A stretch of DNA of 64,000 bases from Epithemia pelagica (taxonomy: Eukaryota; Protista; Bacillariophyta), in the NCBI GenBank assembly GCA_946965045.2, contig OX337240.1, positions 2,728,001 to 2,792,000 on the forward strand. The letters run 5' to 3'. A program made the translations under genes and the position numbers. Shown piece after piece: positions 1 through 57,800 of this stretch. The first letter of the stretch is position 1. Every line of letters starts with the position of its first letter. The notes beneath the pieces are model-generated. The model was not told the origin of the DNA and made no database searches. It saw only the letters and a list, made by a program, of their open reading frames with translations.

Positions 1-419
1 AGGTCATAATTGGAGATTTATACATAGATCAACTCGTCTTTGAATCCTCTCTTTCAATTTGCTCTGTATATGCCTCGCCAAATTAATATATTCATTTCAA
101 AATATTGGACTAAAGTATGGCGAGCAAAATTTACGTATTCAAAACCCTAATGTGGGATGTGCTACGAGATACGTAGAAAAGGTACTGCAGTCGCGCACGT
201 GAATGACACTAGGGGTACATCGCGCGCATACCGCGCAAAACTTTAAGGCTTGATTTTTCGAGAAGTGGATTTTTCAAATATCCCGACCCACAATAGAATC
301 AGTCTTAATTATTATCTATGCCGACATAAAGACTACTAAGTACATGTACTGGGAGCTGGGAGTACGAGTGGAAAAAATAAAAAATAATATGGTGTTATTG
401 ATATCCGGTTAACACGGGG

Positions 420-514
420 TTATCCTGGGATAAGGGACCCCTTCCCGCAGTCAATCACGTAGGATACGCGCCGAATTATCCCAGTCCAGAATTGCGAAGC
501 CGAGAAAATTATCC
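420..514. repeat. Left-end TTATCC motif cluster (candidate recombinase binding sites)
   Basis: TTATCC-TG-GGATAA palindrome at 420-433; TTATCC again at 476-481 and 509-514. Confidence 0.45.
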
Positions 515-715
515 GAGTATGGTCGTTTTTAACGTTTTTCCGTTTGATTTTCGCGCATGGCCAACCACAGTCCACATTACAATGCCTGATACCCTTTGGG
601 TATACCGTTATCATTAACCAGTGATGTACTTTGTCAGCGACACTCCTTGCTAGTACATGAGTAGAACAATATGACCGTACAGTAAACTACTATCACAGTC
701 GCACTATCACAGTTT

Positions 716-1087
716 CTATGTTGTTGGTGTTAATTTGTTTGTTTTACGTTGTTTGTTTGTTGTCTTTTGGTATCTTGTGCCTTTTGTTGTTTGGCATGAT
801 GGCTGAAACTGGAGCTTGCGCCTTGCGCTTTTAAGATATGCCTTTGTAGCCTTCCTTGCCTGTCGTCTTGTTATCTCCTTCACTTCTGTAGTGCTCCCAT
901 TCCTTTTCCCTTCCGTAGCTGTTTTAGGATTGCTTTCTTGTTGCTTTTTGTTTCCTGGCAAACTTTTTAGTACTTGATTTGACATTGCCTCAACAAAGAT
1001 CCGATCACATTCCAAGCAATTCCGATCAATACAATCTCCACACCACAGAAAATCCTTCCCCCCTGTGTTGTCCATTGTTGTTTCCAT
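716..1087 (-). CDS. Small hypothetical protein, CxxC-x4-CxxC N-terminus, basic C-terminus
   Basis: 123-aa ATG ORF containing WCGDCIDRNCLECD and a K/R-rich tail, inside the YR block. Confidence 0.4.
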   Translation of the reverse strand: METTMDNTGGKDFLWCGDCIDRNCLECDRIFVEAMSNQVLKSLPGNKKQQESNPKTATEGKRNGSTTEVKEITRRQARKATKAYLKSARRKLQFQPSCQTTKGTRYQKTTNKQRKTNKLTPTT

Positions 1088-1365
1088 GCCTTTTCGTGCT
1101 TTCCCCTTTGGTCATTGATTTCGACAACCGTGCCTTTACTCGGAAACACACATGACCATACAGGCGTCTCCCAGACGTTAAACAGTAGTTAGGGTTGCTA
1201 GGTAGGTAACGCGACCGGACATACAAATACTGGTGGTCGCCGAGCATGGCAACTTGTTGACTACAAATACTTAGACGCGCTGTTATGTTAAGGACTCCAC
1301 GCGCTCTATATAACGGTTGGAATCAATATGACAAACTCAGACCTAAATGAGGAACGAACGATTTG

Positions 1366-1827
1366 ATGGTTCATAGGATTTCGTTCATCATGGCTTCTAT
1401 CAGCGACGACAACTCTATTTCTACGTTTGACGAAATCCTACAGATGAAGATGGAGGAGGACAGTGAGCCGACTCTAGACAACTCCGTAAAAGAAACCGCG
1501 AACAAGGGGCCTAAGGACAAACATGAAGGGACCGAACCAGACCCTGATGATTTTTGGATGGACGAAGAATCCTCTGTGGAGCTTTCTTTTCTCAAGGATC
1601 AACCTGATCCTTCTCCTAAGAAAGGTGACCCTGACTTTATTGACCCAGATGATGTGGATTATGGGCACCCAAATGACAAAATCACCGCCCTCATGCTCCT
1701 TTCCAATGGTGGAGCCATTTTACACTATGGGTCGTCTCGTCGTGTGTACCGTCCGCCGCATGAGGAACGCAACGAAAACCAAATGTCCCAGACGAAGATT
1801 GATTCTTTTTTCCCCTCGAAGAAGTAA
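1366..1827 (+). CDS. Acidic hypothetical protein
   Basis: About 153-aa D/E-rich ORF (first ATG 1366) followed by an AT-rich 3' spacer. Confidence 0.5.
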   Translation: MVHRISFIMASISDDNSISTFDEILQMKMEEDSEPTLDNSVKETANKGPKDKHEGTEPDPDDFWMDEESSVELSFLKDQPDPSPKKGDPDFIDPDDVDYGHPNDKITALMLLSNGGAILHYGSSRRVYRPPHEERNENQMSQTKIDSFFPSKK

Positions 1828-1892
1828 ATTTTCCTATAAATTCCGATATTAAGTAATAATTTTTCCATTATTTTAGTTTTTTTCTGAAATTT

Positions 1893-2594
1893 TTAATATT
1901 TGCGTTTGTGATTGCGTACATTTCGGTTATTTTGCGATTCTCCACGTTTGATATTATCAAAACTATCTCGTTCCACAGGACCCTCTAGACGAGATGCCCA
2001 GTTCACCAGTGGGAGCGCGAAGTAAAAATCTCTTGGATGAACTGTGCTTGGATCTTGATGAGGAATAGTACTCAAATGGTGATACGACAGGCTGATTCCT
2101 GGTTTCAGCTTAGTAGTCATGTCTTCGGAATTCTCTGGCTTTCTAACTTCCGTCAATTTCCTGTTCTCATCGAAAACAAACACTTCCGGTAATACCGTTT
2201 TAATTCGCAGAACGGGATTGCCACTTAAATACAAAACCCTAGAACAGATGGTCTGATACATGACACTTCCGGAACCTGATGAGTTCATCCGGAAAAAATC
2301 CAATGACTTAATATGCGTGCCATCTGGAATCAGTCCGTGGAAACGTGCTTCACTGACAAATGTGTTTGGCGCTCCTGCTTCCAACGTGAATGTCTTCGGA
2401 GTGACATCTTCCCCCATGATATTTAGAATATCACTTACAAAACTTCTCACATGATTTTTGTCTGGAACGTCATCATCGTTGAATGTACAGAATATCTTGA
2501 TACGATCGTTCCAATCATAGCGACGGTCGTTCATTGGTTCCTTGTTATAATCGCGGCCTTCTGCCTGTGGCCAGATTTCGCGTTCTTGGTTCAT
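1893..2594 (-). CDS. Hypothetical cargo protein A (paralogue of 2792-3751)
   Basis: 233-aa ATG ORF. Shares the G-x(0,1)-IP[DN]GxH-x3-LD and LYxxGxxVLR-x5-P motifs with its neighbour. Confidence 0.65.
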   Translation of the reverse strand: MNQEREIWPQAEGRDYNKEPMNDRRYDWNDRIKIFCTFNDDDVPDKNHVRSFVSDILNIMGEDVTPKTFTLEAGAPNTFVSEARFHGLIPDGTHIKSLDFFRMNSSGSGSVMYQTICSRVLYLSGNPVLRIKTVLPEVFVFDENRKLTEVRKPENSEDMTTKLKPGISLSYHHLSTIPHQDPSTVHPRDFYFALPLVNWASRLEGPVERDSFDNIKRGESQNNRNVRNHKRKY

Positions 2595-2791
2595 GTTTGT
2601 GCCGATTATGAGAAATTCTACTCATGTCCATTTTTTCAAACTCGTTCTAAAACTAGGTACCACATAATTATTTAAGTCTTACAAAGACATCGCTAAATTT
2701 GGTCTACAATAATTGGTTTGATTTGATCGGTAATATTGTAGAAGGGAAACAAATTTGTCCTGACATGGCTGTCTGATATATTCCAATAACA

Positions 2792-3751
2792 TCAAGGATG
2801 GGGGTAGTAGGTGAACACAGAATTGTTCGGGCACAACATACCAACAGCGATCTGGCAGGGCACAACAATTTGAGTCGGGTCATTTGGTGATTCAATTAGG
2901 CGTGTTCCAAAATGAATGAATCCTGATACAGTCGCCGTTTCCATGATATGAATTTTAGGTTCCGACATCACAACACGGAGAACCGCGACTCCAGCTGCGT
3001 AGAGTAAGAACGTTTGGACGACCTGACAACTGAATACTCGACGGGGAAAGTCGGGGTGGCGGATGTAATACACATCCAAGCGTACCAAATGCATTCCATT
3101 CGGAATTCCTGTCGCGAAATCTTCGTATTCCGTTACAGATCGGGAGTGCAGGGAGAGGATGTCACCGGGTAAATCCAACCGACGTAAAAAACAATTGATG
3201 AATTTGCGTCCTTCTCCAGTGCTCTTGGGTAAATGTTGAATCCCGTGAAACTTGAAGAATCTCTTAAAAATACCCGGACCAAGATTCGAACCATAGTGCA
3301 ACACTGGCAAATCCACCGGCAAGGGGAAGAAGAGTCGGTGACTGTTTGCATAAGTAGTGTTAGAGCGTAGGGGCTGGGGTGTTAGAGCAGTGGTGTTAGA
3401 CAAGCCCGTGGCCGGTTCTGGCACGGGCAGGGAGATGTCTGTTCCAGTGTTACCAGTCGTGCTTTCCATGTCTGCCTCTCGCACTTTGCGTTTGCGATCC
3501 GGTGGATTTGCGGACGATCCCATTTTCTCGTCGGTTTCGTTTTTGTCGACATCCTCACCAGTTTTGGGTCCATTGTCGTTGTTTTTGTCGGTTTCCTCCT
3601 TCGTTGTCTTAGATTCGTCCATCTTAATTGTCGTAGTCTTGTTGTCCTCACCAATTCCTTTGTCACTATCGTCGGACGATTCCCCTAGGAGAACGATTAC
3701 TGAATCGGCAGGGACCTGTTTTTTCTTAGGAGAGTTGTTATCCTGTTCCAT
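2792..3751 (-). CDS. Hypothetical cargo protein B (disordered N-half, paralogous C-domain)
   Basis: 319-aa ATG ORF with a charged low-complexity N-half and a globular-looking C-half aligning by eye to 1893-2594. Confidence 0.65.
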   Translation of the reverse strand: MEQDNNSPKKKQVPADSVIVLLGESSDDSDKGIGEDNKTTTIKMDESKTTKEETDKNNDNGPKTGEDVDKNETDEKMGSSANPPDRKRKVREADMESTTGNTGTDISLPVPEPATGLSNTTALTPQPLRSNTTYANSHRLFFPLPVDLPVLHYGSNLGPGIFKRFFKFHGIQHLPKSTGEGRKFINCFLRRLDLPGDILSLHSRSVTEYEDFATGIPNGMHLVRLDVYYIRHPDFPRRVFSCQVVQTFLLYAAGVAVLRVVMSEPKIHIMETATVSGFIHFGTRLIESPNDPTQIVVPCQIAVGMLCPNNSVFTYYPHP

Positions 3752-3979
3752 TATTTTTTTATGACTCTATGCACTAGCTGTGTTGTCTGCTTGATTCACC
3801 GTGGAGACTGAGGAGTGTTCATTGACTCCGAGGCACCACCTACTGCCTTGGCAATCGTTGGATTGGCGGTCTACGGTCTCATTGGGTTGCATTGAAATCC
3901 GGTGCATTGGCTTGTCTGTTAGTCCATTACTTGGTTTGGAACCAAGAGCAAAAGATTTTTCCCAGAGTGTGCGTCAACA

Positions 3980-4561
3980 ATGTCGGAATCGTCGCCACGG
4001 AGTTTCGTTGATTCTCCTCGTTTGACACGTTGGGGATTGGGAGATATTGTGGCGGTAAAGTCTGCGTGGTCTACTCGTAAGGATCACTGTGGGTGGGTGA
4101 CGAAACTTCCCGATCCCGAGAAGCGAAAAGCGCGGGTCACAGTTCAGTTCGCCGATGGTCAGAAAATTTCCTACAGCCCCCAAAATCTTCGAGTCCCGCG
4201 AAAGTTGGATGAAGCTCGTTTAAGTATAGAACAGAACCCGCACTATATCGTGTTCTGTAACCAGTACATTATCAAGAAAAAAAAGAATGAAGCCAATGTC
4301 GTGGACACTGGACCGACTACTCGACATCGGAGAGAGGGAATCTCCGTGAATGTGCCGGAAGAAGTGTTCTCAGAAGGAGGGGTGCGTCACGGGACGGGGG
4401 TAGACACCCCAGATGGTATTGGATCTTCTGGTTATGTATCGAAGCGCATGGAAATAATGTTGGAAACGCTGGTGCAGCAGATGGAAGGCTTGACGGTTCG
4501 GCTAGAGAACATGGAAGAGCGAATCAGGGGTCTCGAAGAGGAAGCTATGTCCGAAAACTAA
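3980..4561 (+). CDS. Tudor/KOW-like barrel plus C-terminal coiled-coil protein
   Basis: LGDIVAVKSAW...GWVTKL...RVTVQFADGQKISYSPQNLR resembles an SH3-like barrel. Heptad pattern in LETLVQQMEGLTVRLENMEERIRGLEEE. Convergent with the YR gene. Confidence 0.6.
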   Translation: MSESSPRSFVDSPRLTRWGLGDIVAVKSAWSTRKDHCGWVTKLPDPEKRKARVTVQFADGQKISYSPQNLRVPRKLDEARLSIEQNPHYIVFCNQYIIKKKKNEANVVDTGPTTRHRREGISVNVPEEVFSEGGVRHGTGVDTPDGIGSSGYVSKRMEIMLETLVQQMEGLTVRLENMEERIRGLEEEAMSEN

Positions 4562-4666
4562 AGTACTACTGATTGGAATAGCTCTAGGTATAGAGACTAA
4601 CATATAACTAAGATTAATACTTTTCCCACCACCACCCGCTTTTTGAAAGGCGACATCCTTTGATAG

Positions 4667-7600
4667 TTAGTTCTCTGAACGCTTGCGTTTCCCTTTCTTA
4701 CAAATTTCACCGTTGCTCTGTAAAAAACGAAGTGTCCCCGCAACGCCTTTGGACTTCACCAATTCGTCCCATGCAGTACACTGATTTTCCACTGCGTTGT
4801 TCCACATACCGACATCAACTCCTGCTTTAGCTGCCACTCCTCTCAACAGTGCATGGACGCGAGAAAAAAAATTCTTGTCTGCTGCTGAATATCCTGTGCG
4901 CCACTTAGACTTGTATTTCTGTTCCAATCCAAAAAAACCACCGGTTATAGGAACCCCTTCGTAGATATCCAGACCAAAAAACTCCTTGTAGATATCGGAC
5001 AGACTGAGCATCCTGTTGTTGCCAATGAAACGACAGGACAAAATTTTGTTAGAGACCAAAATAAACTCGTCTTCTTCTTCATTGTTGTTGTCGTCCTGAT
5101 CGTTGTCGTCAGGGTTTGTTCTGTTCGTGGGACTTGTTGTTGCGTCTGTTTCCTGTGGTGAGTACATCTCCGTCATCAAAGCGGGTGGACTGTCGTTGGG
5201 TGTCGCAACATTGGGACTCGTAGATTGGCCAAAAGGAGAAACTGTTGTGTACTCGTTGTTTGTCGTTGAGGTGTTTGTTGTGTTGTTGATGACAAATTCC
5301 TCCATTTCCGTAGCGCGTTCACTGACACCGCGAGAAAAAAAAGAACCAAGTGTCGATGTTAGCTGGATCTGGCGTCGTTTCGCATTCTCTGTCAATCGAA
5401 GCTCTAGTTGATGGAAGTTCTCCGCCGACGAGAGAACACCGTCCTGGATTTGACTGTGTACGTCTTCCATTGACCGTTCCAGCTTGATCACTCCGTCTGA
5501 CACTTGGTCAAAGCGTCGGTTGATACCAGGTAGGAAACGGTCGAGCAAAGCAACACTGGGTTCGTTGTTGACATCGTTGACTTTTTGGAGATGAAGACGC
5601 ATGGTTTCCGTGAACTCGGAAAACGAAGCAGCAGAAAAGAGAGGAAAACGAGAAAAAAGATCGTGAGAAAGTCTTTTTTCAGCACGACTGTCATTCGATG
5701 ATTGTAAAAGAACAATCATCGCAGCCATGTCTTGTAGGAAAACTTTGCGTAGAAACTTGAGCATACGTAGAAATTCAATCGCTGTGGGGTGTTCTGCACG
5801 ACGGAGATCATCTTCGTCTTCCTGATTGCCTTCGTCGTCCACGTAGCCTAAAACAAAATCCTCTGCGCTATCAATCCAGGGCCAAACAAGACTTTCCACC
5901 TCCTCAGGAATTGTCACATTGCCCCGAGGAAGCCAATAACCATCTGCAACCTCAAAGCCGGCCATGCAGCGAATGGCTGAAATCGGTACTTTCGCACTGT
6001 ACCGAGATTCTTGAGTGTCGCGTTCCCAGTTCCCTAGTGTAGTAAAATATAACAGGAAGAGTGAGAGTACGATTGCTGTAAGGGATTGAACAAGAAAAAC
6101 AAAAATAGAGGTCGTACCGAGTTGTTTGACAAAATCTGGAGAGAGTTCTTTGAACTCGCAGTGAGACGGCGCCGTGTGACGACACCAGTGCGTCACATGG
6201 TCTGATACTATACCGAGCTTTTTGAAGACTTTGGAGAGTTCGCGACGGAAGCATTGTTGGTCCATCTGACGACAATCGTCGGACCCAAGTTCGACCAACA
6301 ACTTAATGTCGAACCATGAAGAGTTGTCGCGGAGATCTGGAAAATTGTGTCCAGGGATGAACTCGGTGTTGGCTTGGAAACGGTAGACAAGGTACGTCGC
6401 TAAAGCACCAATCGGGCAGGTGAAAACATCACGGTGACGGGTAGCGCGCGCGAATTGCGAAGGGGAATCCGCTTGCACAGTTTTCCCAGTGAAAAACTGC
6501 ATAAGCATGATATCCATTGAGTCATGGTCCTGCTTGCATTTAATAGGGAACACGCGTAGGTCAGAAAGTTCCGCCATGTGCAAGCTCTCGCTCCGAAGAA
6601 TGGAGGCATAATTCATTAGGAACGAAAAGCGATTGCGCAATGATGTGAAGGTACTGCGAACAACATTTTCTCCACAACCGGCGAGCCAAAAAACTTCTTC
6701 GATCTTGCCTACTAATTTGGTGTGCTCGAAAGGAGAGCATTCCTTCACTTTTTCCCTATAATTCTTCTTAGCCACACGGGCTGATCGACCCTGGGGAGTA
6801 ATTCACTGGTTAGATTTGTATTGCCAAATTCGTTTCAAATTTGTTGTACTTACCTGTACAATTTTCAAAAGATTTTTAACGCTACGCGTGCAGATCTGGG
6901 TGTCCCAGTGAAGCGAGTTGCTTCCATTACCTTCTTCGGCCTGGTAATCATACAATTTGCGAACCGCCGATCGGTAGGTGGATACTGAAGAAAAACCAAG
7001 CGGGTTTCTTGGTTCCAAGGCTTCCAAAATTTCTGTTTCATGGCCAATAATTGTACCATCGTTGTCATCAAGAATTGCTAGGTATTTTTCTCCCAAGCGG
7101 TCGTAGTCCAATTCGTCAAATACTCCCGGGTGTTTGTGACTGGTTTTTTGGTCGCGAAACACTTGATAAAACATGAATTGATAAAGCTTTTCTCCCGTCA
7201 CGGTGTAGCGCGTACATTCCGGTTGAAAGTAGTAGATTGAAGCACAAAATCCTCGAAACTCTAAAATTCGATACTTATAGGCGTCGCGTGTATTCTTTCG
7301 CATAAGCGTATCCATTATCTGGTGGGTCACAGCTCGCATCTCTGTCACACTCATGCGCATGCGGGGCTGGGGAAGCTCTGTGGTACCACGGGCTATCGAA
7401 TATAACGACTGGGATTGCGTACGGCGAGAATTGGATGGGGGGGTGTTGTTGTTGACCGTAACCTCGTCCTCGTTCGGGTTGTTTGGGTTGCTTGGGTTGC
7501 GCGAGTTTGGGGTGGATTGAGCTGCAGTGGTTGTGTTGTTGGTGTTGGTTGTAGGGGTTAAGGCAGATATGTCAGGAAATAGAATACGACGACTATTAGC

Positions 7601-7744
7601 CTCAGGAGTATTCTCAGTCCTTGCCGTAGTAGGTCGGTTCCCATTGAGGGCATCTCCATCATTGTCATTGCGTCCTCTGGAGCGACGAGAAGACGACGAC
7701 GATCTACGAAGGGGAGATGGGTTGGCTCGACTCGTTCGCGGCAT
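4667..7744 (-). CDS. Crypton tyrosine recombinase (NDC10-II-like YR domain + C-terminal GCR1_C), 3 predicted exons: 7744-6854, 6790-6118, 6033-4667
   Basis: Catalytic-type motifs ILRSE (R), TGKT (K), THWCRH (HxxR), LGNW (W) and SRYS (Y), plus RHRDVFTCPIGALATYLVYRF. GCR1_C-like KEFFGL...LEQKYKSKWR...FFSRV. Introns GTAAGT...CCCCAG (6853-6791, 63 nt) and GTACGA...ACTAG (6117-6034, 84 nt) restore a continuous frame. Confidence 0.9.
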
Positions 7745-8040
7745 GTCAAAAGTAACGAAAATAACAGATCTGTATTAATGAAATGAGACCACCTCCTGCT
7801 ACGTTAGGATTTAAAGATCGTAAAGAGAGTCATTCCATTGCATCATTGGATGTTGTTTGTGGTTTTCCAAGAATGACTCAAACGCATTGCCAGTAATTCG
7901 TCTTTGGCCGTGCTTGCGATAGGTATGGGGCAAGTTTGATAGACAGGCGTGGTATTCGAGAATGACCATCCCTATGTATGGAGCGACGGACAGAAGGAAA
8001 ATGAACCTTATCCCACTACAAATAAGACGCTTTATGGCTA

Positions 8041-8213
8041 GGATAATCACCGTTATTGGTTACGAGATAAGCAGTGGCAGGATAAAAATGATGGTTTGTG
8101 CGACTCAAATGAGGATAAAATTACTAAAATTCTTATCCTGGGTACGAATAATACTCTTTAATATATAGAGGTTGGACCTGCACCGCGGTGCTACGGATCG
8201 GATCCGCGGATAA
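8041..8213. repeat. Right-end GGATAA motif cluster
   Basis: GGATAA at 8041, 8080, 8113 and 8208; TTATCCTGGG at 8133-8142. Confidence 0.45.
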
Positions 8214-9159
8214 TATACTCATACATCATACTATGATACGCGTATTGTGTGACGATTTCGAGCCAGGCGGCATAACTTCGAAGGTTCAATCTTCACTCAA
8301 ATTGAACATGGAACAAAAATATCCAAAATGCCCTTTCTCGTTTGACTGTGTATACATCAAGCATGGTCACTGGTTGGCAACTTGCAGTTTTTTGTTTCCA
8401 ACTCTGTCACTGTTCATCAAAGACGCCCCATGTCGCGACAAACAAGGAATTATTTGCTGTCAATGGAGAGAATATTGATTGATTGCCTTGAATCTGTCGC
8501 CATGCCAAGACGGGAAGAAAACTGCTTGATGGTTCATCGCTGACATGACATGACCGGCCAACAACACAGATAAACTTGTGGTTCCGATGCCAGGCGTTTA
8601 ACGGAATCCATCATGGGACGCTTGCTATTGCGCAAACCTTATAGAGGTGCGCAAGACAATAGCTTTGTAGGTGAACGAGAAAGCAGTTTCGTCAAGGACA
8701 TGAATCAAGGCGTCGGAAGTATGGCTTCGTTTCTCGTTATTGGATGCTTTTGATTTGTGGTTCTGCTTCATCTTTTCCATGAAACAACGACAGGGTCAGG
8801 TGGCTAAATGATTGAGCTTGTCACGTGAGGAAAATCGAATGAGATGGTGCACAAATGAATTGAGTCGGATTGGAAATCAAAATGAGATTCCCAGACTTGC
8901 CTTCATTCTGCAGCTTATTGCCTTTATGGTCGCGAAACGCTTTGTTTCACGATCCATAGTCATTATCCCATGTTCAATTTCGATCCTCAGGGACACCTAC
9001 CGTCCAGGTCAGCACCTGCTGTCACAGTCACATAAAAACAAAAGAATAACGAACACTCGCAGCTCTCAGGCATGAATTACCCCAACAAGTGTTGTGTTCT
9101 CGCTGGTGTCCCGTGAGCCAGCAGAGGTATGATACAATGTGAAAGTGGGACTACAGCTC

Positions 9160-10663
9160 TACTACTCACTCTCCATTGTTCACCATTGCTGCTTGACAAT
9201 GGTAGCCGTCAGAAGTCAGGAATGCAACGTAAGAGCAGCATCGGATTCTAGATGCTCAAAATCACTTGATTATCATAAGCGTCACGGGCTCTCTGGGAAT
9301 TGATTATTCATCGTTTTAGGCCAAACAAATTATTCTTTGGTCGATATATGAGCTGTTCTAGAGGGCTACTCATATGCATGTATATGCGTCGACTATGCGG
9401 CACTGTAGTGAGTGTGTTTCACCAACTGGATAGCACATCTTGTACTGATCAAAATGTAAATCGTCTTTTACCTGTTGAGACATTCTAGGAAACCAGCCAT
9501 TGTTGCTTTCTTCTAGATTGTCATGTTATCTACACTTCTGTTCATCCAGCTCACGCGTCGTCCTGCCTCAATATATGACCGAAAACGACTCTCGCACAAA
9601 TCCTTGTTGCATTGTTGAGAAATTTTCGTGGTTGCTAGACTATACTGGGTGGTTGCCTTTGGATCAGAATCCCAAGATAAGGTCACGAATCCTCTAGCCA
9701 TGAAACTATGTCGCATGGCTTTGGCTTTTCGCATAGCTATCAACTCTTCATAGGAGTACATAGCTCCCAATAGCCCACAACTAACTCTCCACTCGAACGA
9801 GTTGTCGACACAAAGATACGCTGTCTTGAAGCTCAAAATGTGGTAAAGAGACGTTGTCGTCAACAAAAAGACCAAGTGACAAGAGAACATCAATGGTTTT
9901 ATGGAAACCGCAGCGGATTGCAATGTTGAAAGTGGAAGGTACGTAGAAGCAAAATGAAGCCAGTGGCTTCTGGTCAAGTGTGGTTCGCTCTCTTATCAGC
10001 TGCCATGTATTCAACGTACTCAGGAATGCGTGGGGAAAAAGTGGAATCGCCACCGCTATTTCAGAGTAGACCATGTCCATTCCAGAGAGTATGTTGCTCG
10101 AAGGATCCGGATGTATTTGGAGTCTCTTGATCCGACCCTCTTTTTTCAAATGGATAGAATGGCATCGTCGAGGTTGATATTCGCACCAACAGATCAGTGT
10201 GCCATACATATGATCGGGTAGCATGCGGAGAAGACGACAAATCATGATTCGTGCTTCGAATCTGCGAGCCATTGCGCCCCCTTCATGGCTTGGTTCTGCC
10301 ATGCTCGGATGATGATATGCTCTCCGTTCACATGTTTGGAATTCACGATGGAGTACAAGGCCCCTTCCAGCTGGAGAAGCAGACAAGCAAGCAGTGATGA
10401 AGACAAGCGGAGCAAGTCATCGTCCGGGCATTGAATCTCCAAGCCATCGAGCATTTTTCCATGGCTTGCTTATTCCACGCGCGGATGATGATTTGCTCCT
10501 TTTGTTTCTCTCATCACCGACGATGGTTGAAAGGACAATGAGCAGAGATATTGCCTCCCTTGACACAGGCCGCCGACGGCAAATCATCGTTCGAGCATTG
10601 ACACTTCATGCCATCGAGTCGTCTTCCATGGCTTGTCTTTTCGACGCTAGGATGATGATTTGC
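9160..10663 (-). repeat. Decayed dispersed repeat, inverted homologue of 49100-51725; holds three ~85-nt palindrome copies
   Basis: 9160-9400 matches the reverse complement of about 51480-51720, 9500-9720 matches about 51080-51300, and 9880-10030 matches about 50710-50890. Palindromes at 10237, 10412 and 10579. Confidence 0.8.
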
Positions 10664-12319
10664 TCTTTTGTTTGGCCTACAGTGCGCAGGGCCTGTGAAA
10701 GCAAGAAAACACAGTCTTATGGATCATCAGCCCATGTCAGATCAAGACCGAGCAATGATTGGAGTGACATAACAAGACGGTTCTCCGAAATGGGCAAACC
10801 ATTCATGTTCCGCATCGTAATATTGATGAGCTGCTCCGAATTCTTCATCCAAAGTGTCCATGGTCAACACCAGTTCAGTTTACGGAGGGAAGGAACAAGG
10901 GTCTTTCCCTCCCGCTGTCCTTCCTCTCTAAGCTCTCTTTCATTATGGCAACTGAACAATCACACCCTTCTGTTGTGGGCTAGAAGACAACAACTTGTGC
11001 AGCCCAGGAATCCTGATGTGGACGTTTGATATTCAAGACGGGTTAGTGAAGGAATTAAGTGATTCGACTCATTGCGTCATTGCAGAAGTCCTCTTTCTTC
11101 ATCATGCGTGGTACTTCGTCCACAGCCACAGAGATATCGATACTGGCATTCGGGAACGGTGTCCATTGGAACCTTGGATAGTCGGACTTTTAACAAGGTT
11201 CGAGAATGGGGAGATTGTTGCTCCGAACTATTCCATGATTTGAATCAGATGCTTATCGATGAGTTGACTTTCAAGAGCATGATTTAGAACATGCGTGCTG
11301 AGTTAGGGACGAGAAGGTGCCAAAATGGCATGCGGTAATGGGAGCATGACAATCACATACATCTCCTCTACCTTTCTATTAGAGATGTATCTGTCCCTCT
11401 CGCAGGGGTAGAGCGAGATGATGGACAGTCATTTTTGTGGTCAGTGGTCGGTTCGGATGCGAGTCGGACTGTGTCGGATACCATGGTTTCTGATTATTTG
11501 CTCAATATGTACTGAAAAGAGTGAGTACGAGTATACATTACTCGTCTTGTCTGTACTGGGTGGAGTGACGTGGCTGATGCTGGCCAGACTCCGCGACCGA
11601 CAACAGAGGTGCGACTGCTCCGCCTCCTCGACGCGAGGCGAGCATCCGATTTGATTCCCACAATCGGAAGTTTTAGGATGACCCTGATGCAGAGTCGTTG
11701 GAGCGTGAGAAGCAGGGTGTGGAAGTCACTAGCGAAAAATTTTCTAAGTTCTGCAACTTTTGAACTTTTTCACCATAATTTCACAAATCAAATCACATTA
11801 CTAGCCTTTCTCAAACGAACTTTTTTCACAAAGTCAAATTGCTCACATTTTTCATCGAAGTTGACTTGGACCCATCCAACTTAGTTATTTACAAGCTCTT
11901 ATTACCGGAACATTGGCACACACCAATGTAATTATCCAAGTTGCAATTTTCTCACATAGTTCAATCAAGTTACATGTCTCCACTTAGTGACTCGAAGTCT
12001 GAAGTCTAATTGCAAGTCTCAAGATTAGAACTAAATTCTCCAAATCAAGTTGTAATTTTACTTCATTGCAACTAGTGTCAGTGTCGACTGTCGACACTTG
12101 ACACTTGGTCACTTCGCACTATCCTACAGTAACAAACACAGTCAACAAGATATAATCGGTACTGGCCCCTTACCTCTTTCTTACCTCTTAACACTGAACC
12201 CAACACACAATCTCTTCACCTCTGCTGTGGCTTGTTGCAGCGTTACAGCACACGAATGAGGTGTGATTTTTCCAGTTGACACTGTCGGAATCAAACAACC
12301 AATCTCTGGTTGAAAGCAC

Positions 12320-15300
12320 ATGTCTTTGTTGCCAATCGAGGACATTGAAGTAGATTTGAACTCCCCTGCTGTTTCCAGTCTTTCATCAGCGACATTCATG
12401 TATGCCATGGCTCCCCAAAGAAAACAGCAGTCATCTCAATCCTCCAAAGAAGCTCGACTATCGTCAGCAACTGGAGGTGACGACAACAATGAAGAACCCA
12501 CGAACCCACCGACAACAACCAATGAAAGAGAAAATGAAAACCAGGCGCCTCCTACAACAGCCAACAATGAAGACAACTCTCAACAAGTTGCTGCTCCTGC
12601 TCCTACGGACGAGGGACCCTTGACACAAAGCCGAAAGGATGAAATCAAACAAGAGAAATCATACGTCTCGTTTTGTCCACCTCCGAAGAAGCTCTTTCGA
12701 AATTGCCAAAATTCGTTCTTTGGAAAAGTTCGTTACCTGAACTTCAAGAAATTGACCAGCACGAAGAAGACCTTAAAATCAAACCCCGCTGTCAATTTGG
12801 GGAAAATGCCAGGTTTATTTTCGTGTCTGCAATTGTTAGAGTCAGCTTCTGACGAAGACAAAGAAATGAACGATGGCTATCATTCCATTGTAAAGAAGCT
12901 TGTTGTTTGTCCACATTGCTTCGACGACCCAACTGTTAGTCTCGACAAATGTCTCCTTGGTCTTGGCAGAGGCCTTTCGTCCAACATCAGCACACACTTT
13001 GGTAAATACCACCCCGAAGTCGTGGAAGATACTGCCTCTGTTGCAACCGACCCTACTCAACAACCCATTTCCATGTATTCTGGCACAATGGTTAGCAAAC
13101 AAGATGCCAGAGTAATGTTTCATCAGTCAATTTATAAGTTCGTGAATGACTGTGGTTTCCCGGCATCAACTGTTGAGAAGGAATCGTTTAGAGATCTTCT
13201 CAAGTGTGCAATTGCCAACGCCCCAAAGCTCAAGGAAAAGGACTGTTCCATAAGCAACAAAGCAATCACTCGGATGAGATTGGAGTCCTACAATGATTTT
13301 CTCAAGACCGTTACGGAACTTGGAGAAAACGTACGACAAGCGTACCATGATCTATGCAACAAACCCATCGCCTTTTCTACGATTACACACGACATCTGGC
13401 AGGGAAATGACAAGGATGTCCTTGGGGTTTGTTTGATGTTCACCGATCCTCGGAACTGTAAATCTTACAGACTCCCGATTGGCCTTTGCTCAACAAAGGG
13501 TCATACAGCAAAACAAGTAGCCGACCACACCTCATCAATCCTCAACGCTGTCGGCTTTACGCAACAAGACCTCTCTGCCTCCGTGAATGACAACACGAAC
13601 TCCGCCGTGTTGGCTGGAAAGTATATAGTGGGTAATAAGACAGGCGGCAAGTGCGACATGCACAGGGCCGAACTGATCTTGAAACACTCCACAGGTCTGG
13701 CAGTCCGGAAAAAAAAGGCGAAGTGGTGGACAGTAACGAGGAATTCATGACTGTTTATAGAAAATTCTTCAAATTTGCAGCATGGATGATGAGTTCGCGT
13801 GCCAAAAGATTTGAAAAGATACGTTCCTACGCCCTAAAACATGGGAGGAAGGTCATCAAAGTCTCTATGCCGAATACAACCCGTGTTGGAGGCTGCATCA
13901 TTACCTTTCATGACCTATTCCGGAACAAATTTGTAACGGATATGTATGCAAAAGAGCAATTTGAGTACAAGGACGACGAATTCATTAAACATTATCCCTC
14001 TGAAGAGGACTGGCAGCTCTTGGCCGAATTCGAGGGAATCTTGGCCCCACTCAAACAAGTCTCCATGTCACTCCAAGTTGACGACCCTTCTGCATCGGCT
14101 TGTTCATTGCTGGAAATCTTCACCAGTAAGCATTGTGTGGAAGTTATGAAAGATAAGGGAGTGCCCGTGTTGACTGTTACTGGGCCTAATGCACGCCCAT
14201 GGGATGCCAGTCTCACCATCGCCAAGCTTCAATCGTATCGAGACATTGTAACATACGACAAATTGTCAGAAAAGAGTCAATTGTTGATCGAGCGAGTACT
14301 TGTGGAATATACAAACTACATTGAGGAAGGCCATGACTCCCACGCTGAACACGCCATGTGTGGACATCCTTTCCTTGCATCTTATGGTCCCAACATACTG
14401 AAAACCATAAATGTTTACGACGATGAGAGTCTTAAACGGATTCGGAAAGAATTTGTGATGGACATTGTCCGCAAGTTCTCGCAGCCAAAGAAGAATGGCA
14501 CCAATCCCCAATCCAAGTCGAATCAGCAGGAACGTGAACAACAAAAGGAAAGTACACCTGTGGAGATCATTGAGGACGAAGAGGAAGAGTCTTCAGTCCC
14601 AAAAGCTGTCTCGAATGTAATGGACTGCTTTAACATCTTCAAGACACATCGCATCACCAAGGAGAAAGAAAATGCTGCACTAATGGAGGCGACGGCGACA
14701 AGTACCAGTACAGATGACCAAGTTGATAGAGCCAAGCTATACAAGATGTGTGATGAACAGTTCGGACGCTATCTCGAATTTTGCGAGAACGTTGTCCATG
14801 GATCCTGGGAGGACTTGATTCGCCAGTATCCCACTGCCGCATTTCTGAAACTATCTGGTTCGTGGAACCCTGAAAAACAACAAGAATTCAAGTTGGCCTG
14901 TACGGAACACTATTTCCATGTCGTTGGGAAATATTTTGACGTCTTGAAATGGTGGTCCGACAACAAGATGCTATTCCCCAAACTCTTTCCTAGTGCCTTG
15001 ATTTGGATATCGAAACCTGCGACAAACGCATTCCAGGAACGCGTGTTCTCTCGGTCGTCGTTCATGGATAGGAATCCCTTAATGAGACGCCAACTAGACA
15101 AGAACTTTGAAATGCGCACTATGGAAAGTATTACAAGGGAGGTGCGCTCTGAGATTGTCAAGAATGAAAAGCTACTCAAACAAGGCGCGACCTCCGACGA
15201 AAAAAAGGCAGCCAGTGGCCGCCAAGCAAAGAAGGTGATAGATCTCAGCCAGGAATCTAAAGGGGAAGAAGTCAGTCAGGTACAACAGACCGCACAACAA

Positions 15301-15978
15301 CGCACTCCGGCAACAGGAACACAAGTTCCTGTTGTCCCACTGGAAAAAGCCACACCGACACAATCCGATATGACTCGGATGGAAACGGTACTACGAGCAA
15401 CGTCGAAGCTGGAACTCTACGAACTGTCCGGAACTATTGGTGCCCACGGCATAGAGGCGGAAACAAGTTACAAGTTCAAGTCGGTCAAAAAGGTTGATAA
15501 GAAGACAGTTGTGAGCGATGCGACATGGGACGACGTCGAATTGGTTGATCTGGTAGACGATCCACGAGATGAAGACCAACTAGAGGCTTTGGATCAAAAA
15601 GTTGCTGCTCCTTACGACGATGACGAAGACAAGGAAGATTCTGACACGGCGTTAAAAGAAGCCATCCAGGAAAGAAAGAATGAACTCATTCAACAAACCG
15701 CGTTGGAGAAGACTGTTGCTAGTCTGCCCGTTGCAAATGCCAATGAAGGCACGAAAGGAGATAGTGGGAAACGTAAAGCCTCTTCAACTATTCAAAAAGG
15801 AAGGAAACGGACGAAGCAGAATTCACTCTCTGAGGCACTCGCAAGAACTGTGGTTAGAACACCACGCAAGAAAGACAATCGCAAACCACCCCCAACCCCA
15901 AACGACTCGCCAACGAGAAGAAGCCCAAGACTTGCAGAGAAGGAAGTCTCAAGTGCGGACAATGACGGTACCAGTTGA
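12320..15978 (+). CDS. hAT transposase split by a frameshift at an A8 run (13709-13716)
   Basis: BED-like finger CPHC...HFGKYH. DDE residues in THDIW, VNDNTNS and FQERVFS. CDMH (CxxH) motif. Two overlapping ORFs (12320-13750, 13651-15978) join as VRKK/GEVVDS. Start may be 12320, 12398 or 12407. Confidence 0.85.
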
Positions 15979-16080
15979 TCTCCGACCACGAACGTCACTG
16001 AAGGTGACAATGGAAGAAACGTCACGGATACTATACATCCATAATCGCAGTGCATTTTGGTAAATATAATATATTGACAG

Positions 16081-17922
16081 TCATTTAGTATATTCTTTTA
16101 TCAACTGCAGAAAGAAATACTTGAGATGGCGAAGATTCGCTGGAGATTTAGATTCGGATTTGTCATGAGAGTGAGCCACAATAAAAGACTCCATTTGTTC
16201 TTGGCACTTGCTTCTGGTCTGTGGTTTGTTAAGTAGTTGTCCTAGAGAACCAAATAAAGGATTGATTTCCTCCCATCGTTCTTTAGGAAGCCATGATTGA
16301 AGGTTCAAAGAGCATTCCATGCCGTCATTGATATGAGACTCCGTCCAATTGAGAACCTTAGTTGATCGGATAACATGAATATCTGAGGGAATTCCTTCCG
16401 TCCGGCCAAATGCCGTTTGTAGAATGATTGTTCCCGTCTTGTGGCCAATTCCAGGTAAGGTCATAAGCTCAGTAAGGGAAATGTCTTTAGGAATGCGACC
16501 TTTGTGTCGCTGGACGAAATAGTCCGCGGCGTTGACTATGCGTTCCGCATTGACACGATACCGTCCTGTTTCTGCAAACAAACTACAGAAAACATCCATC
16601 CCAAAATATGTTGACACTTCAATTGTTCCTTGTGCACTAGTGATGCCCGATTGGAATAAGCGAGGGATCACTTGAGAGAGACTTTGATCTGATGTGGCCG
16701 AGCTCATCAAGATAACAATGAGACACATGAAGGCTGGGTCAGAGTCTTCATATTCCGACATATTGTTGGTAATCCATTCGGACCATGTGTCTCTGGGGGC
16801 TTCCAAACCAGACTGAAGGAAATACCGACGTAAATGGGAAAGATTATCAAGTAAAAACAGCCGGGAATCAATTGTGGATTGGTTTCTAATGGGGATGGAA
16901 GGGCGAAACATTCTGGTCATGACAGGTTTGGTAATTGCAGGTGTCCCAGGCATGTGTCTGTCGCCATAGACTATCTGTTCCTTGGCGGAACATGATTGCA
17001 ATAAAGCATGGCAGAGAACAGTTTTTCTTTGCCGAGTCAAGACATGGGCAGTGGGGGAAAATTGTCGCTTGGTCCAATATTCATCAATGACAGGAGAAGA
17101 AGCCCAATATTCATGGGTGACAGAAGTAGAAGCGTTGTTGCTATTTGGGCCCATGGTAGATTGAGAAGCTTTGGCAACTGGAGTTGATGGAGGACTTGTA
17201 TCAATAGGAGGAGGGGACGTTGTTGTATCCAGTTTCATTGAGTAACGGTCATCCTCCTTCGTGCTCTTCTTAGTATGCGCAACAATGTCCTCAACAACGA
17301 TGTCGATGCTTGGACTAATACAAATAGGACACTCTGTCCGTAGGTCAAAGGAATTTCTAACCTGGATTCTGGCATTGTGTCGGGTCATCCAGGTTAGAAG
17401 ATTCCATTCCACGGAAAGTTTAGTGTAGTTGTTTTGCTGATGGTAATCGGCATTGAATTTTTGAAAAGCTTTGAGACCATTGGAGGAAGGCAAAGAAAAT
17501 ATTGGTCGGCATTTTCCTTCAATGGAGATGAAGGGGAGGTCGTCGGTGGGGGGGTTCATCTCGTATGTGACTTGGAATGAGTCATCTTCTTGGGAATACA
17601 GACCCGTAAACACTATTCGACAGACAGTGTTCAGTAAGCTTTCGAATGACATGCGACTGGGAGATAAACAAGGGTGGCTTGTGTTGGATGGATAGTCGAC
17701 TTGTTGGTAGTGCAGACTTCCATTGTACCGGGTAAGCCACAGCAACACCACATCTTTTATGTTCTCCATTGCCAAGTCTTGTGTCGCCTTTTCCAAGGGA
17801 GTGGTTAACAAAGTTGAGTCCTCTAGCATCATGGTCATGAACGACATTGGAATATGGGTCACAGTGATGACTTGGTGACAAGTCACATGGAGGTCGATGG
17901 TACGGTCATCTGATGCTTCCAT
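16081..17922 (-). CDS. Endonuclease III (Nth)-like HhH-GPD DNA glycosylase/AP lyase with long N-terminal extension and no 4Fe-4S motif
   Basis: 613-aa uninterrupted ORF. FMCLIVILMSSATSD, HhH LPGIGHKT (catalytic Lys position), GIPSDIHV (catalytic Asp position), WLPKERWEEINPLFGSLGQ. C-terminal Cys cluster motif missing. Confidence 0.9.
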   Translation of the reverse strand: MEASDDRTIDLHVTCHQVITVTHIPMSFMTMMLEDSTLLTTPLEKATQDLAMENIKDVVLLWLTRYNGSLHYQQVDYPSNTSHPCLSPSRMSFESLLNTVCRIVFTGLYSQEDDSFQVTYEMNPPTDDLPFISIEGKCRPIFSLPSSNGLKAFQKFNADYHQQNNYTKLSVEWNLLTWMTRHNARIQVRNSFDLRTECPICISPSIDIVVEDIVAHTKKSTKEDDRYSMKLDTTTSPPPIDTSPPSTPVAKASQSTMGPNSNNASTSVTHEYWASSPVIDEYWTKRQFSPTAHVLTRQRKTVLCHALLQSCSAKEQIVYGDRHMPGTPAITKPVMTRMFRPSIPIRNQSTIDSRLFLLDNLSHLRRYFLQSGLEAPRDTWSEWITNNMSEYEDSDPAFMCLIVILMSSATSDQSLSQVIPRLFQSGITSAQGTIEVSTYFGMDVFCSLFAETGRYRVNAERIVNAADYFVQRHKGRIPKDISLTELMTLPGIGHKTGTIILQTAFGRTEGIPSDIHVIRSTKVLNWTESHINDGMECSLNLQSWLPKERWEEINPLFGSLGQLLNKPQTRSKCQEQMESFIVAHSHDKSESKSPANLRHLKYFFLQLIKEYTK

Positions 17923-54892: not shown

Positions 54893-57800
54893 GTGTCCAT
54901 ACCAGGTGACGAAGACACCGTATCCAGTACCGTTGATCTTCCAACACCTGTAGCCAATCCGACGAACGAAGACGCCCTTGTTGACGAACAAGGACAGAGC
55001 ATTGCTGCTTCGGAATCGCAGATTGTTGAGTCTCCACCAGGTCCATCTAACAACGACACCCAACATCAGGGTTTGATTGTTGCATCTCAACGACAAAGAA
55101 GGAAGACCACCATGAGTGACGAGACTCCTACTCCTCCACCCGGTATCGATTACCGCCCCGACCCGCCGAAGATTGGCGGACTGGTCCGAAGCAAGAAGGA
55201 CGAATGGGTGGCCTGGACTGGAGGAAAACCCACGTACAAGTGGGATGGGTTAGAGGTAAAGGCGACAGAACCACTGCGAACGATGCAGATACGTACCCTG
55301 ACCGACAAGAAATACTACGATCGTATCTCCGGGCCTGACGAAAAGTACAGCAAGAAGACCGGTGATTTTAGCCGTCTCCAGGATGAAATCAAGCAGCACT
55401 TGATTAAACACGGCATGGATTCGATCGCATACCTCCCCAATCCTCATGATCCCAAAGACATGTTGTTCATTGTAATCGAGCACCCAAAATATACGATGAG
55501 CAAGGTGAAGGAATTGATGAAGACGCAGATTGTGAGTTATGACAAGTACGACAGAAACAACGACGTCAGTGCCCAGGACTACTTACTGGACTGTCTGGAA
55601 AAGTCCTTTAGGCACGAAGTTGAGGACCAGAGTCGGGAAGTGACGTGCTTCCCCGAGCTCTTCATGGTCCTTGTCACCATCGTGACACATGATTCCCCGC
55701 AGCACTGGGAACAAGTGAAGCACGAGATGCGAGCTCTTGTGCCTCACAAGTACCCTGGCCACGATATTATGGCGTTGACTAAAGATTTTTCGGAAAAAGC
55801 GCGACCGTTGATCGCAGCTGGACAGTACGACCACACTCTGACTGGGAACCTCCTAGCTAACATCCTCAAGACTGAATGGCCTGACACACCTAAGTTCGAC
55901 CTACTTACTCTGAACAAGCGTGTCAATGACGGTATTATCCATATTCGGTTTCTAGATCGCTCTATCGGAGACAGTCATATGAAGAAAGAGCGTCTTTTGT
56001 ACACAGATGTTATCGAAGAGGCGAACAAGAAGTACCTAATCTGTGTCAAGGAAGGTGAATGGTCACCTAAACGAAGTTCTCCTGATTCTAAATCCGTCCC
56101 CTCGTCGTTCACCGCTAACAAGGCTACCGTTTCGAAGACTAAGAAGAAACGGCATTCTATTATGACTCAAGCTAGTCTTAATGCACTCATTCAGACACTT
56201 CGAAACCCGCCGGGTTCCAATCCGACTCCAAGCAATGGACCAAACACCCAGCCTGGCTCCAATCACCGCGACAGGAAGGGAAAGCCGATTCACAAGCGTA
56301 ACAACACTCGCGTCGATCGATCGCAGGCTCACCCTTGGAAGAAGATCCCTCCTGCTCCTGGTGCACCTGAGCAGCAGACGATCCAGGGTCAGCGGTGGTT
56401 CTGGTGTGGTGTTTGTACCCGTTGGAACACCTCTCACACCACGGCAAACCATATTGTTGGGTATAAAAAGTCTCCTGGCGACAAGGACAAAGCAAAACCT
56501 CGGAATGCCACCCATGCGAAGAAACTTGAACTCGAAGTATCCGCTTGGCAGACCGAATTCGATCTCGACCAACTTGATCCTCCTGCCTTGCCCGTCGCTG
56601 CTTTACCCGACTGTATGTCCCTTGCCTCTGTGGATTGTTGCGAAGCTCTGATGAATGATGATGATGATTGTTGCGATTCGGTTGATTGTTGCAAGGACAC
56701 CGTCGACCACTACGTCTTCTTCACCATTTGGGACATGTCACCATCCGATGACAGCTCGTCCATGGACTGCAGTTCCACCAACTCTGGAAACGACGATGAT
56801 GACACTGACCGGACACCGCCTATTCCGTTTGACGAATTGCGCCGCATCCTGTCACCCAACAACAATGAACCAACCGCCACCAATCACAACGATAGCGACC
56901 ACAAGGATGATGACAATGAACCATGCACTTGCAACACAGAAACAAAAGAAAAGAAAACAAGCACAAATAATGAAACAGTCTCGATCTGTCGACCTCACAA
57001 GGACGATGACAGCTCCACTGAAAGTGAAGACAACGAAGATGAGTATGCTGATATGCCACCACTTGTGGCACAAAAACTCACACCAGTTGTGGCAAACAAA
57101 GACTTACCGAGCTCGGCAAGTAACAAGGAAGAAGAACAAGAAAAGAAAAAGGGAAAGTTGAGTGGATCGCATGCCAAGACACTGTACTTCGACAGGTGGG
57201 ACGACATCGATATGTGGTACGGCAGTGACCACAGTCCCACAGACCAACGTACCTTCTCTAGCGTTGAAGCCAACGCAGCTGTGCACGACAAAAGCTTCGA
57301 CAGCACCAAGATCAAGCAGGAGGACGAACAGGATAGTGATGAGAATGCTGGTGGTTTGGACACAACCATGGATACACAAGAAGGATCGCTTATCAGCCAT
57401 GACAACAGCAGCGACCTTACCCACCTCAAGAACCTGCAAGAAGGACTCCTGGACGACTCGAAGCCGCCAGCTCTTCGGCGACCCGAGATCTCACCGGTGA
57501 CGAACCCGACGCCATTGCGCCATGACCAATTCCCGACTCCTGCCACTGAAGCTCTCGAGCAGTGGACTCGAGGTTTTGTACCTCGGCCACGTCCACGTGA
57601 TCCACGCATCTCCATCGAGCAAGAAGCCAACACAGCAAAAAGAGATGGAATGAGGTACGAAAGGGCGCAGTACACGGTGTACGCTCTTCGACACCAAGAA
57701 CCAGAACTTACCGTGGCTGTCGCCTACCAGCGAGTCAAGGACGAAGAATGGTTTGTGGGATGGTTCATTGATGGAACCAGAATCCCGAACCATCCGAATC

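Follow-up and report, generated by a model that had tools for sequence, protein, structure and literature searches.

The left end of the 64,000-nucleotide window analysed here (contig OX337240.1, positions 2,728,001 to 2,792,000, forward strand) carries a discrete Crypton-like unit of 7,770 bp, window positions 384-8153, in which a three-exon tyrosine recombinase (YR) gene is accompanied by five small open reading frames (ORF1 to ORF5). A whole-genome DNA search returned two more full colinear copies, on contig 8 and contig 1, and one degraded partial copy on contig 16. The full copies, referred to as A, B and C, measure 7,770, 7,807 and 7,968 bp, share about 70% nucleotide identity and are identical in gene order and ends. 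In pairwise BLAST of the three copies the similarity ended abruptly outside the unit, which gives it sharp borders. A first-pass annotation of the window had proposed a multi-gene YR element family with a unit at 420-8142. The YR gene, the five intact ORFs and the conservation of gene order and ends in three copies are indeed present, and the unit is real, although its true limits lie 36 bp and 11 bp further out. The features of the element, in window coordinates and from left to right, are as follows.

384..389, no strand: left terminal direct repeat ATAATA, putative crossover core; the homology of copies A, B and C begins here.
390..640, no strand: left subterminal region, about 80% conserved versus about 70% elsewhere, with four TTATCC/GGATAA motifs at 420, 428 (minus), 476 and 509.
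716-1087, minus strand: ORF1, 123 amino acids (aa).
1390-1827, plus strand: ORF2, 145 aa when started at the ATG that lines up with the other copies.
1893-2594, minus strand: ORF3, 233 aa.
2792-3751, minus strand: ORF4, 319 aa.
3980-4561, plus strand: ORF5, 193 aa.
4667-7744, minus strand: YR gene, three exons, encoding the tyrosine recombinase.
4667..6033, minus strand: YR exon 3, with the stop codon at 4667-4669, W250 and the catalytic Y259, the final part of the NDC10_II-type core, a helical mid-section and a GCR1_C-like tail.
6034..6117, minus strand: YR intron 2, 84 nt, GT..AG, in frame and without a stop; boundaries the same in A, B and C.
6118..6790, minus strand: YR exon 2, with the catalytic residues R61, K98, H196 and R199; NDC10_II match at 8e-18.
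6791..6853, minus strand: YR intron 1, 63 nt, GTAAGT..CAG, containing a stop; position kept in A, B and C.
6854..7744, minus strand: YR exon 1, with a disordered N-terminus and a SAM-like N-terminal domain (weak Phage_int_SAM_1 match).
8004..8147, no strand: right subterminal region, more conserved than any other stretch (about 89% between the copies), with five TTATCC/GGATAA motifs at 8008, 8041 (minus), 8080 (minus), 8113 (minus) and 8133.
8148..8153, no strand: right terminal 6-bp direct repeat ATAATA, placed from end alignments of the copies.

The hexamer ATAATA stands at both termini of A, B and C, and also of a further complete copy from a second assembly (L050, described below). DNA identity between copies was 80-91% at the termini versus 64-74% internally. 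Counted on either strand, TTATCC occurred four times in 420-514, five times in 8008-8138 and once across the intervening 7.4 kb. Hence nine of the ten hits in the element fall within its terminal 131 and 146 bp; the shuffle expectation for the window as a whole is about 22 per 64 kb. The motif pair at 420 and 428 forms a near-palindrome (420-433), and in copies B and C most of the hexamers were found at matching positions. Terminal inverted repeats (TIRs), long terminal repeats (LTRs) and long direct repeats were searched for at the element ends and none was found. Likewise, no long palindrome was present across the joined ends, where folding yielded small TTATCC/GGATAA hairpins only (z -1.3 to -2.7).

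The genes run in the orientations - + - - + - along the element at a coding density of 77%, a mixed arrangement and not the strictly alternating one first described. The AT-rich spacers of that description were found between convergent and tandem genes, with GC contents of 0.17, 0.32 and 0.38, but not in the two divergent spacers, which had a GC content of 0.46. In A, B and C alike, the reading frames of all six genes are open. Between these copies, the proportion of non-synonymous differences (pN) was 0.21-0.41 versus 0.67-0.87 for synonymous differences (pS) in every gene, with values of 0.21-0.27 versus 0.67-0.79 for YR exon 1 and 0.39-0.41 versus 0.78-0.87 for ORF1, and synonymous sites were saturated. 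The ratio of non-synonymous to synonymous substitution rates (dN/dS), run for YR exon 3, was 0.125 for the B-C pair. All element genes are thus under purifying selection across copies, and A, B and C are three old sublineages with one copy each in this assembly. The saturated synonymous sites and the low non-synonymous change indicate that the five small ORFs are real genes that have long been maintained. The pattern is far from chance, since three colinear copies have sharp ends and all ORFs remain open despite the saturation. Searches of the five small ORFs against Pfam, PHROGs, PDB sequences and the ESM Atlas returned nothing usable.

The recombinase had been called catalytically complete-looking, and the alignment with seven homologs is in good agreement with this: the columns of R61, K98, the HxxR pair H196 and R199, W250 and Y259 (numbered along the translation of window 4670-6775, minus strand) are conserved, with R199 replaced by C in P0017. 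The read-through YR ORF matched Pfam NDC10_II at 6e-30, and exon 3 matched it at 3e-10. The insert of 28 aa that read-through of intron 2 would add is missing from every homolog in the YR alignment, and the spliced product comes by arithmetic to about 976 aa. By eye, the exon-1 translation resembles an N-terminal motif of the homologs, NT.KAY.PK..E...FCD...FMFYQ.FR. Exon 3 further holds the GCR1_C-like DNA-binding tail at about 4763-5026. Scored directly, GCR1_C on this tail gave E=0.12 and 13 bits versus a Pfam threshold of 23. At E=2e-15, tail residues 49-136 align with a stretch of P0010 (residues 692-776) that is itself a GCR1_C match at 1e-8, above threshold. The tail is therefore a putative GCR1_C domain by transitive homology only, and it is in this form that the earlier assignment to the YR plus GCR1_C type holds. 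Among named relatives, the one closest to the YR comes from the diatom Seminavis robusta and is annotated as 'Ndc10 domain-containing protein' (28% identity), consistent with the stramenopile origin proposed at first. Near the YR relatives in Seminavis robusta (L048) and on a metagenome contig (L049), tblastn gave no matches to the accessory genes. No reverse transcriptase (RT), RNase H, other transposase domain or peptidase was matched by Pfam in any ORF of the element.

Evidence for mobility came from the assembly ENA ERZ21939226, which contains two copies 98.7-98.9% identical to the window copy at other loci. The copy on contig ctg1356l (L034) is 98.85% identical, and its homology ends at most 2 bp from ATAATA. 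Its flank corresponds at 97% identity to C7:2813118-2814515 of this genome, where the element is absent. The empty C7 site reads ...GAATAAAATAATA followed directly by TATTATGCG, with a single ATAATA, and the filled L034 site reads ...GAATCAAATAATA followed by the element's TGGAGTTATTG. The L034 copy is broken at the equivalent of window position 7231, within YR exon 1, by a 5-kb repeat (L034:236-5355) that is 98% identical to C7:3238628-3243785 and has long ORFs of 1156 and 555 aa. The second copy, on contig ctg1255l (L050), is complete at 7,771 bp and 98.7% identical, and its flanks lie 35 bp apart in this genome at C1:1773533-1773569, again with the element absent. These two empty sites bear out the first-pass view that the unit is a mobile element. 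The finding of copies about 99% identical at loci that are empty in this genome indicates that the element moved recently. The window copy, L034 and L050 differ pairwise by 0.9-1.0% in a star-like manner, with 36, 28 and 30 private changes. One lineage therefore inserted, at roughly one time, into no fewer than three places. The gene calls suggest that both ERZ21939226 copies are damaged: in L034, ORF5 is called in two pieces and has a 1-bp indel at window position 4277, and L050 has a split ORF4 and a shorter YR call. The copy in the window is intact. The L050 flanks hinted at a target duplication of 5 bp, AAAGA, which was rejected because copies A, B and C show none.

No empty allele of the window's own insertion site was found in the assembly by searching with both flanks, of which the left is a repeat resembling a miniature inverted-repeat transposable element (MITE) and the right a dispersed repeat. 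Immediately to the left of the element, the MITE-like repeat (about 350 bp) covers window 1-311 and about 48 bp upstream of the window; it has inverted ends of about 35 bp and at least 16 genome copies at 85-95% identity. The right-hand repeat is 46 bp long, partly palindromic and situated at 8165-8211, 12 bp from the element, with at least 28 genome copies at 88-96% identity. Another contig of ERZ21939226 (ctg1248l, L035) holds a B-type copy at 6980-11616 (88-89% identity) that lacks the ORF3-ORF5 region through an internal deletion of about 2.6 kb. This copy has a piggyBac-like DDE_Tnp_1_7 gene a few kb away and may be a deletion derivative of the six-gene element.

The five accessory proteins have few recognisable parts, most of them short motifs. 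ORF1, which had no Pfam match, combines an N-terminal four-cysteine motif LWCGxC..CxxC (about 1007-1042), the motif YL....RKLxF (RKLQF, about 806-820) and a basic tail. These motifs are invariant in four lineages, the distant C5 family included. The RKLxF motif resembles cyclin-docking RxL motifs such as KRRLIF of p21, a resemblance that we treat as a lead only. ORF2 has an N-terminal TFD[KER]IL.M followed by an acidic tract, a conserved core GHPNDK..ILHYGS and, four residues before the stop, a canonical PCNA-interacting (PIP) box, QTKIDSFF (1789-1812). The PIP box is kept across A, B and C as QTKIDSFF, QMKMEDFF and QKNIKDFF, with variable adjacent residues, and the ORF2 homolog of the C9 family has the variant QLKMEMFL in the same column.

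ORF3 and ORF4 are paralogous and have an alpha+beta core domain in common. ORF3 extends beyond the core at its C-terminus (..RGES.NNRNVR....Y), and its AlphaFold2 (AF2) model has a predicted local distance difference test (pLDDT) score of 69. Foldseek against PDB and BFVD, together with a wide VIA-align search, gave nothing convincing for the ORF3/4 fold (best Z 4.0). Scattered rows at Z 3-4 pointed to an NTF2/VirB8-like fold and were too weak to call. ORF4 begins with a SUMO-interaction-type motif (SIM), VIVL followed by a Ser/Asp run (about 3662-3703), and continues with a disordered linker and the core domain. The surrounding N-terminus is unconserved, and the SIM pattern itself, a hydrophobic quartet followed by a Ser/Asp/Glu run, was found in 5/5 long ORF4-type paralogs, from A, B, C and the C9 and C5 families. 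In ORF5, an N-terminal SH3-like (KOW/Tudor-type) beta-barrel at residues of about 20-72 was modelled with a pLDDT of about 90 and is followed by helices, a disordered linker and a C-terminal helix of about 40 residues (151-192), possibly a coiled coil. The closest folds to the barrel were ribosomal KOW barrels, with a root-mean-square deviation of 2.0 A over 54 residues and E of about 4e-3. ORF5 identity among A, B, C and the C9 family was 37-60%.

Whether these genes are a core set or cargo was judged from more distant loci and from protein searches. Loci of deeper lineages were read at C9, C5, C7, C10 and one C2 locus. At the C9 locus a YR gene is accompanied, in a different order, by two ORF3/4-type genes, ORF5 and ORF2-type genes, and the C5 locus contains a YR gene, an ORF2-like gene, two ORF3/4-type genes and ORF1. 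Accessory gene families recur beside YR genes in the C9, C5 and C2 lineages. Within this genome, relatives of ORF2 were found only where multi-gene copies lie, namely A, B, C, C9 and C2; for C2, the setting was taken from coordinates only. An ORF3 word search returned only three proteins, all of ENA source, and the two looked up, P0001 and P0003, were located in ERZ21939226. A full HMMER pass of an ORF3/4 profile over 1.84 billion representatives returned 13 proteins, seven of which have the lengths of the aligned copies; the four looked up (P0001, P0003, P0029 and P0032) were all in ERZ21939226. The ORF5 profile search returned five proteins, all from ENA, and the one looked up, P0034, was also in ERZ21939226. 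In the searches run, no relatives of the accessory genes were found beyond this genome and ERZ21939226. The set is fixed and under purifying selection, its families recur in deeper lineages and no outside relatives were found, which together identify the five genes as core accessory genes and not as captured host genes. They form a fixed, element-specific set, the opposite of variable cargo, and the term 'cargo' used in the first-pass annotation is therefore abandoned.

The element has defining features of a Crypton: a catalytic YR, no RT, LTR or TIR, 6-bp terminal direct repeats and mobility as a discrete unit. In our view, positions 384-8153 are very probably an intact autonomous Crypton-class transposon with a CryptonF-like YR, from a lineage permanently equipped with five element-specific accessory genes. 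In the mechanism that we propose, the YR would be placed on the TTATCC arrays by its DNA-binding tail, possibly with the help of accessory proteins, and would excise the element as a circle whose junction holds one ATAATA, as expected from the accepted Crypton model (PMC3212892). The circle would re-integrate by strand exchange with (A)ATAATA in AT-rich target DNA, leaving ATAATA on both sides without a true target-site duplication. Judging from their motifs, the accessory proteins may link the element to the nuclear machinery of the host. ORF2 could dock on PCNA via its C-terminal PIP box, and ORF4 could bind SUMOylated partners via its SIM. ORF1, with its zinc-knuckle-like motif and RKLxF, might serve in cyclin-CDK (cyclin-dependent kinase) docking or as a small DNA-binding directionality factor. 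ORF5, with its SH3-like barrel and long helix, might bind chromatin or DNA as a dimer and act in tethering or target choice. Together, these proteins might time or complete transposition at replication (S phase) or repair, or stabilise the excised circle.

Several observations weigh against this reading or narrow it. A 310-aa ORF3/4-like gene exists outside YR elements, at L044:2898-3827 (C7:2605898-2606830) and in L045 (C10, about 2154k). It belongs to a repeat of two copies, about 5 kb long and 97% identical, and the 6 kb read contained neither a YR gene nor TTATCC. The gene may represent a domesticated copy, a non-autonomous relative or part of another element. The ORF5-type barrel is likewise scattered outside YR elements. 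One example is a 350-aa ORF (L053:2348-3400, minus strand; C2:2218848-2219900) that lies directly upstream, on the same strand, of pieces of a MULE/ZSWIM RNaseH-like transposase; its twin is situated at a distance of 32 kb. Unrelated transposon families of this genome may have the barrel as a common module. The reading of the first-pass annotation had turned on whether the five ORFs occur without the YR gene: the full set was never found without one, but an ORF3/4-like gene and the ORF5 barrel do occur elsewhere. On balance, this check mostly leaves that reading standing. At L034 the right junction was not reached, because the 5-kb repeat interrupts the copy. At the C1 locus the flanks are 85% identical with indels and contain no ATAATA in this genome, so that the locus demonstrates emptiness and not the target sequence. 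ATAATA as the target is consequently supported by one clean empty site and five filled sites. The TTATCC motifs that flank the crossover are in direct orientation, unlike the inverted core sites of classical YRs. The docking motifs are short and are recognised as candidates by consensus only, and we infer both the roles of the accessory proteins and the circular intermediate.

A different role for the five genes would be replication and maintenance, with the excised circle as a replicating, segregating nuclear episome like the yeast 2-micron plasmid and the chromosomal copies as its integrated form. We regard this as improbable. The unit is compact, uses both strands and is 77% coding, its gene set is fixed across lineages, and its lineages are long-lived at very low copy number, all of which would suit an episome; the conserved PCNA-docking box could recruit the host replisome, and a protein with a barrel and a long helix suits a tether. 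However, no replication initiator, helicase or polymerase was found among its products, no long inverted repeats of the 2-micron kind were present, and no free circular contig was seen; every copy found was chromosomal with clean junctions. It is also doubtful that the five genes make the excised circle a short- or long-lived nuclear episome in the specific manner of ORF2 loading PCNA and the replisome, ORF5 tethering, and ORF4 and ORF1 joining SUMO and cyclin-CDK signalling. If an episome did exist, the element would amount to a diatom nuclear plasmid that integrates, would bridge eukaryotic transposons and plasmids and might offer a natural chassis for diatom vectors.

The occurrence of an ORF3/4-like gene in a two-copy repeat without a YR gene, and of the ORF5 barrel beside MULE transposase pieces and elsewhere, would fit true cargo, that is, host genes captured by a Crypton and passively carried. 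Cargo would differ between copies, whereas three copies with saturated dS all keep these five families in one order and under purifying selection. Moreover, the families recur in C9, C5 and C2, ORF2 relatives are restricted to multi-gene copies, and the few proteins matched by the ORF3/4 profile (13) and the ORF5 profile (five) all belonged to ERZ21939226 where looked up. We therefore hold passive cargo to be very unlikely, and a cluster of host genes is an unlikely description of the locus too. It appears extremely improbable that the unit is a small DNA virus, or a virus-like element, that has integrated and encodes a YR integrase. A small multi-gene YR unit with orphan proteins, and docking motifs for host factors of the type common in viral proteins, would be compatible with such an origin, and the ESM Atlas feature search gave clusters of phage 'hypothetical proteins' at 0.93. 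Those matches, however, had under 170 features in common, a number within the range expected by chance. No capsid-like fold was seen, the ORF3 model is not a jelly roll, Foldseek against BFVD gave E values of 0.05 or more, PHROGs gave nothing significant and IMG/VR gave nothing for ORF5. A Crypton with a core set of accessory genes remains the reading that we adopt.

Outside the element, the window contains a region at 12320-17922 with an hAT-type transposase ORF (13651-15978; Dimer_Tnp_hAT, 1e-6), adjoined on the opposite strand by a 613-aa ORF with an HhH-GPD glycosylase domain (16081-17922). A very long open frame of 2,881 aa is found on the plus strand at 54893-63538.

To our knowledge, no class of eukaryotic DNA transposons is less well understood than the Cryptons, which have been described as elements of one gene, or rarely two; their transposition has never been reconstituted and their ends are considered featureless. 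The lineage described here gives handles on eukaryotic YR transposons in the form of defined ends, a crossover hexamer and candidate protein-binding repeats, and five accessory proteins that form a fixed set and bear recognisable docking motifs (PCNA, SUMO, possibly cyclin-CDK) give a handle on the use of the host. Since the synonymous sites between copies are saturated, small eukaryotic transposons can evidently retain multi-gene 'operating systems' over very long periods. The element, intact and recently active in a probable diatom, might also be tried as a genetic tool. In a full-text search of the literature, no report joining Cryptons with PCNA and none of Cryptons with more than two genes was found.

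The closest known elements are those of CryptonF, reportedly described by Goodwin and co-workers in 2003. This group is defined by a YR with GCR1_C and by 6-bp terminal repeats, and its YR gave rise to the NDC10_II family (Kojima & Jurka 2011, PMC3212892). The element shares with it the Ndc10/Cbf2-type YR core, the GCR1_C-type tail, direct repeats of 6 bp at the termini, the lack of TIRs and LTRs and a low copy number. CryptonF elements, however, are described as one-protein elements of fungi and oomycetes, whereas the element analysed here belongs to a probable diatom, has five more conserved genes and subterminal TTATCC arrays, and has a GCR1_C domain that is recognisable only via an intermediate sequence. 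CryptonS elements lack GCR1_C, have mostly TATGG termini and sometimes carry one extra gene for a C48 peptidase (PMC3212892). They resemble the element in their stramenopile hosts (oomycetes and a diatom) and short terminal direct repeats, and differ from it in that they have no GCR1_C, mostly TATGG ends and at most one extra gene, which is unrelated to these five. With a GCR1_C-like tail and ATAATA termini, the element falls outside CryptonS. A link between Cryptons and SUMO nevertheless has precedent, because the C48/Ulp1-type enzyme of some CryptonS is a SUMO peptidase.

Like the element, Starships are multi-gene units mobilised by a YR, the captain, which in them lies at one end. Their captain YR is of the DUF3435 type, they reach sizes of up to about 700 kb, and their cargo is variable and host-like (e.g. 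PMC13465315); a recent preprint reports a circular intermediate for them (bioRxiv 10.64898/2026.09.21.753150). In comparison, the element measures 7.8 kb and has fixed element-specific genes, and its only strong YR match in Pfam is NDC10_II, not DUF3435. The YR retrotransposons DIRS, Ngaro and PAT carry RT and RNase H, for which the element ORFs had no match. The yeast 2-micron plasmid (FLP, REP1, REP2, RAF1) is extrachromosomal and does not integrate; plasmids of this type have long inverted repeats, 599 bp in the 2-micron, in which the recombination target lies. Both it and the element are units of about 6-8 kb with a YR and a few small proteins, which in the 2-micron exploit host replication and segregation; the copies of the element found here are all chromosomal and have no long inverted repeats, and for the accessory proteins no similarity in sequence or fold was found. 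A PIP box is also known from the Drosophila pogo transposase and from LINE-1 ORF2p. In those elements it lies within the transposase or ORF2p, whereas here it lies at the C-terminus of a separate small accessory protein.

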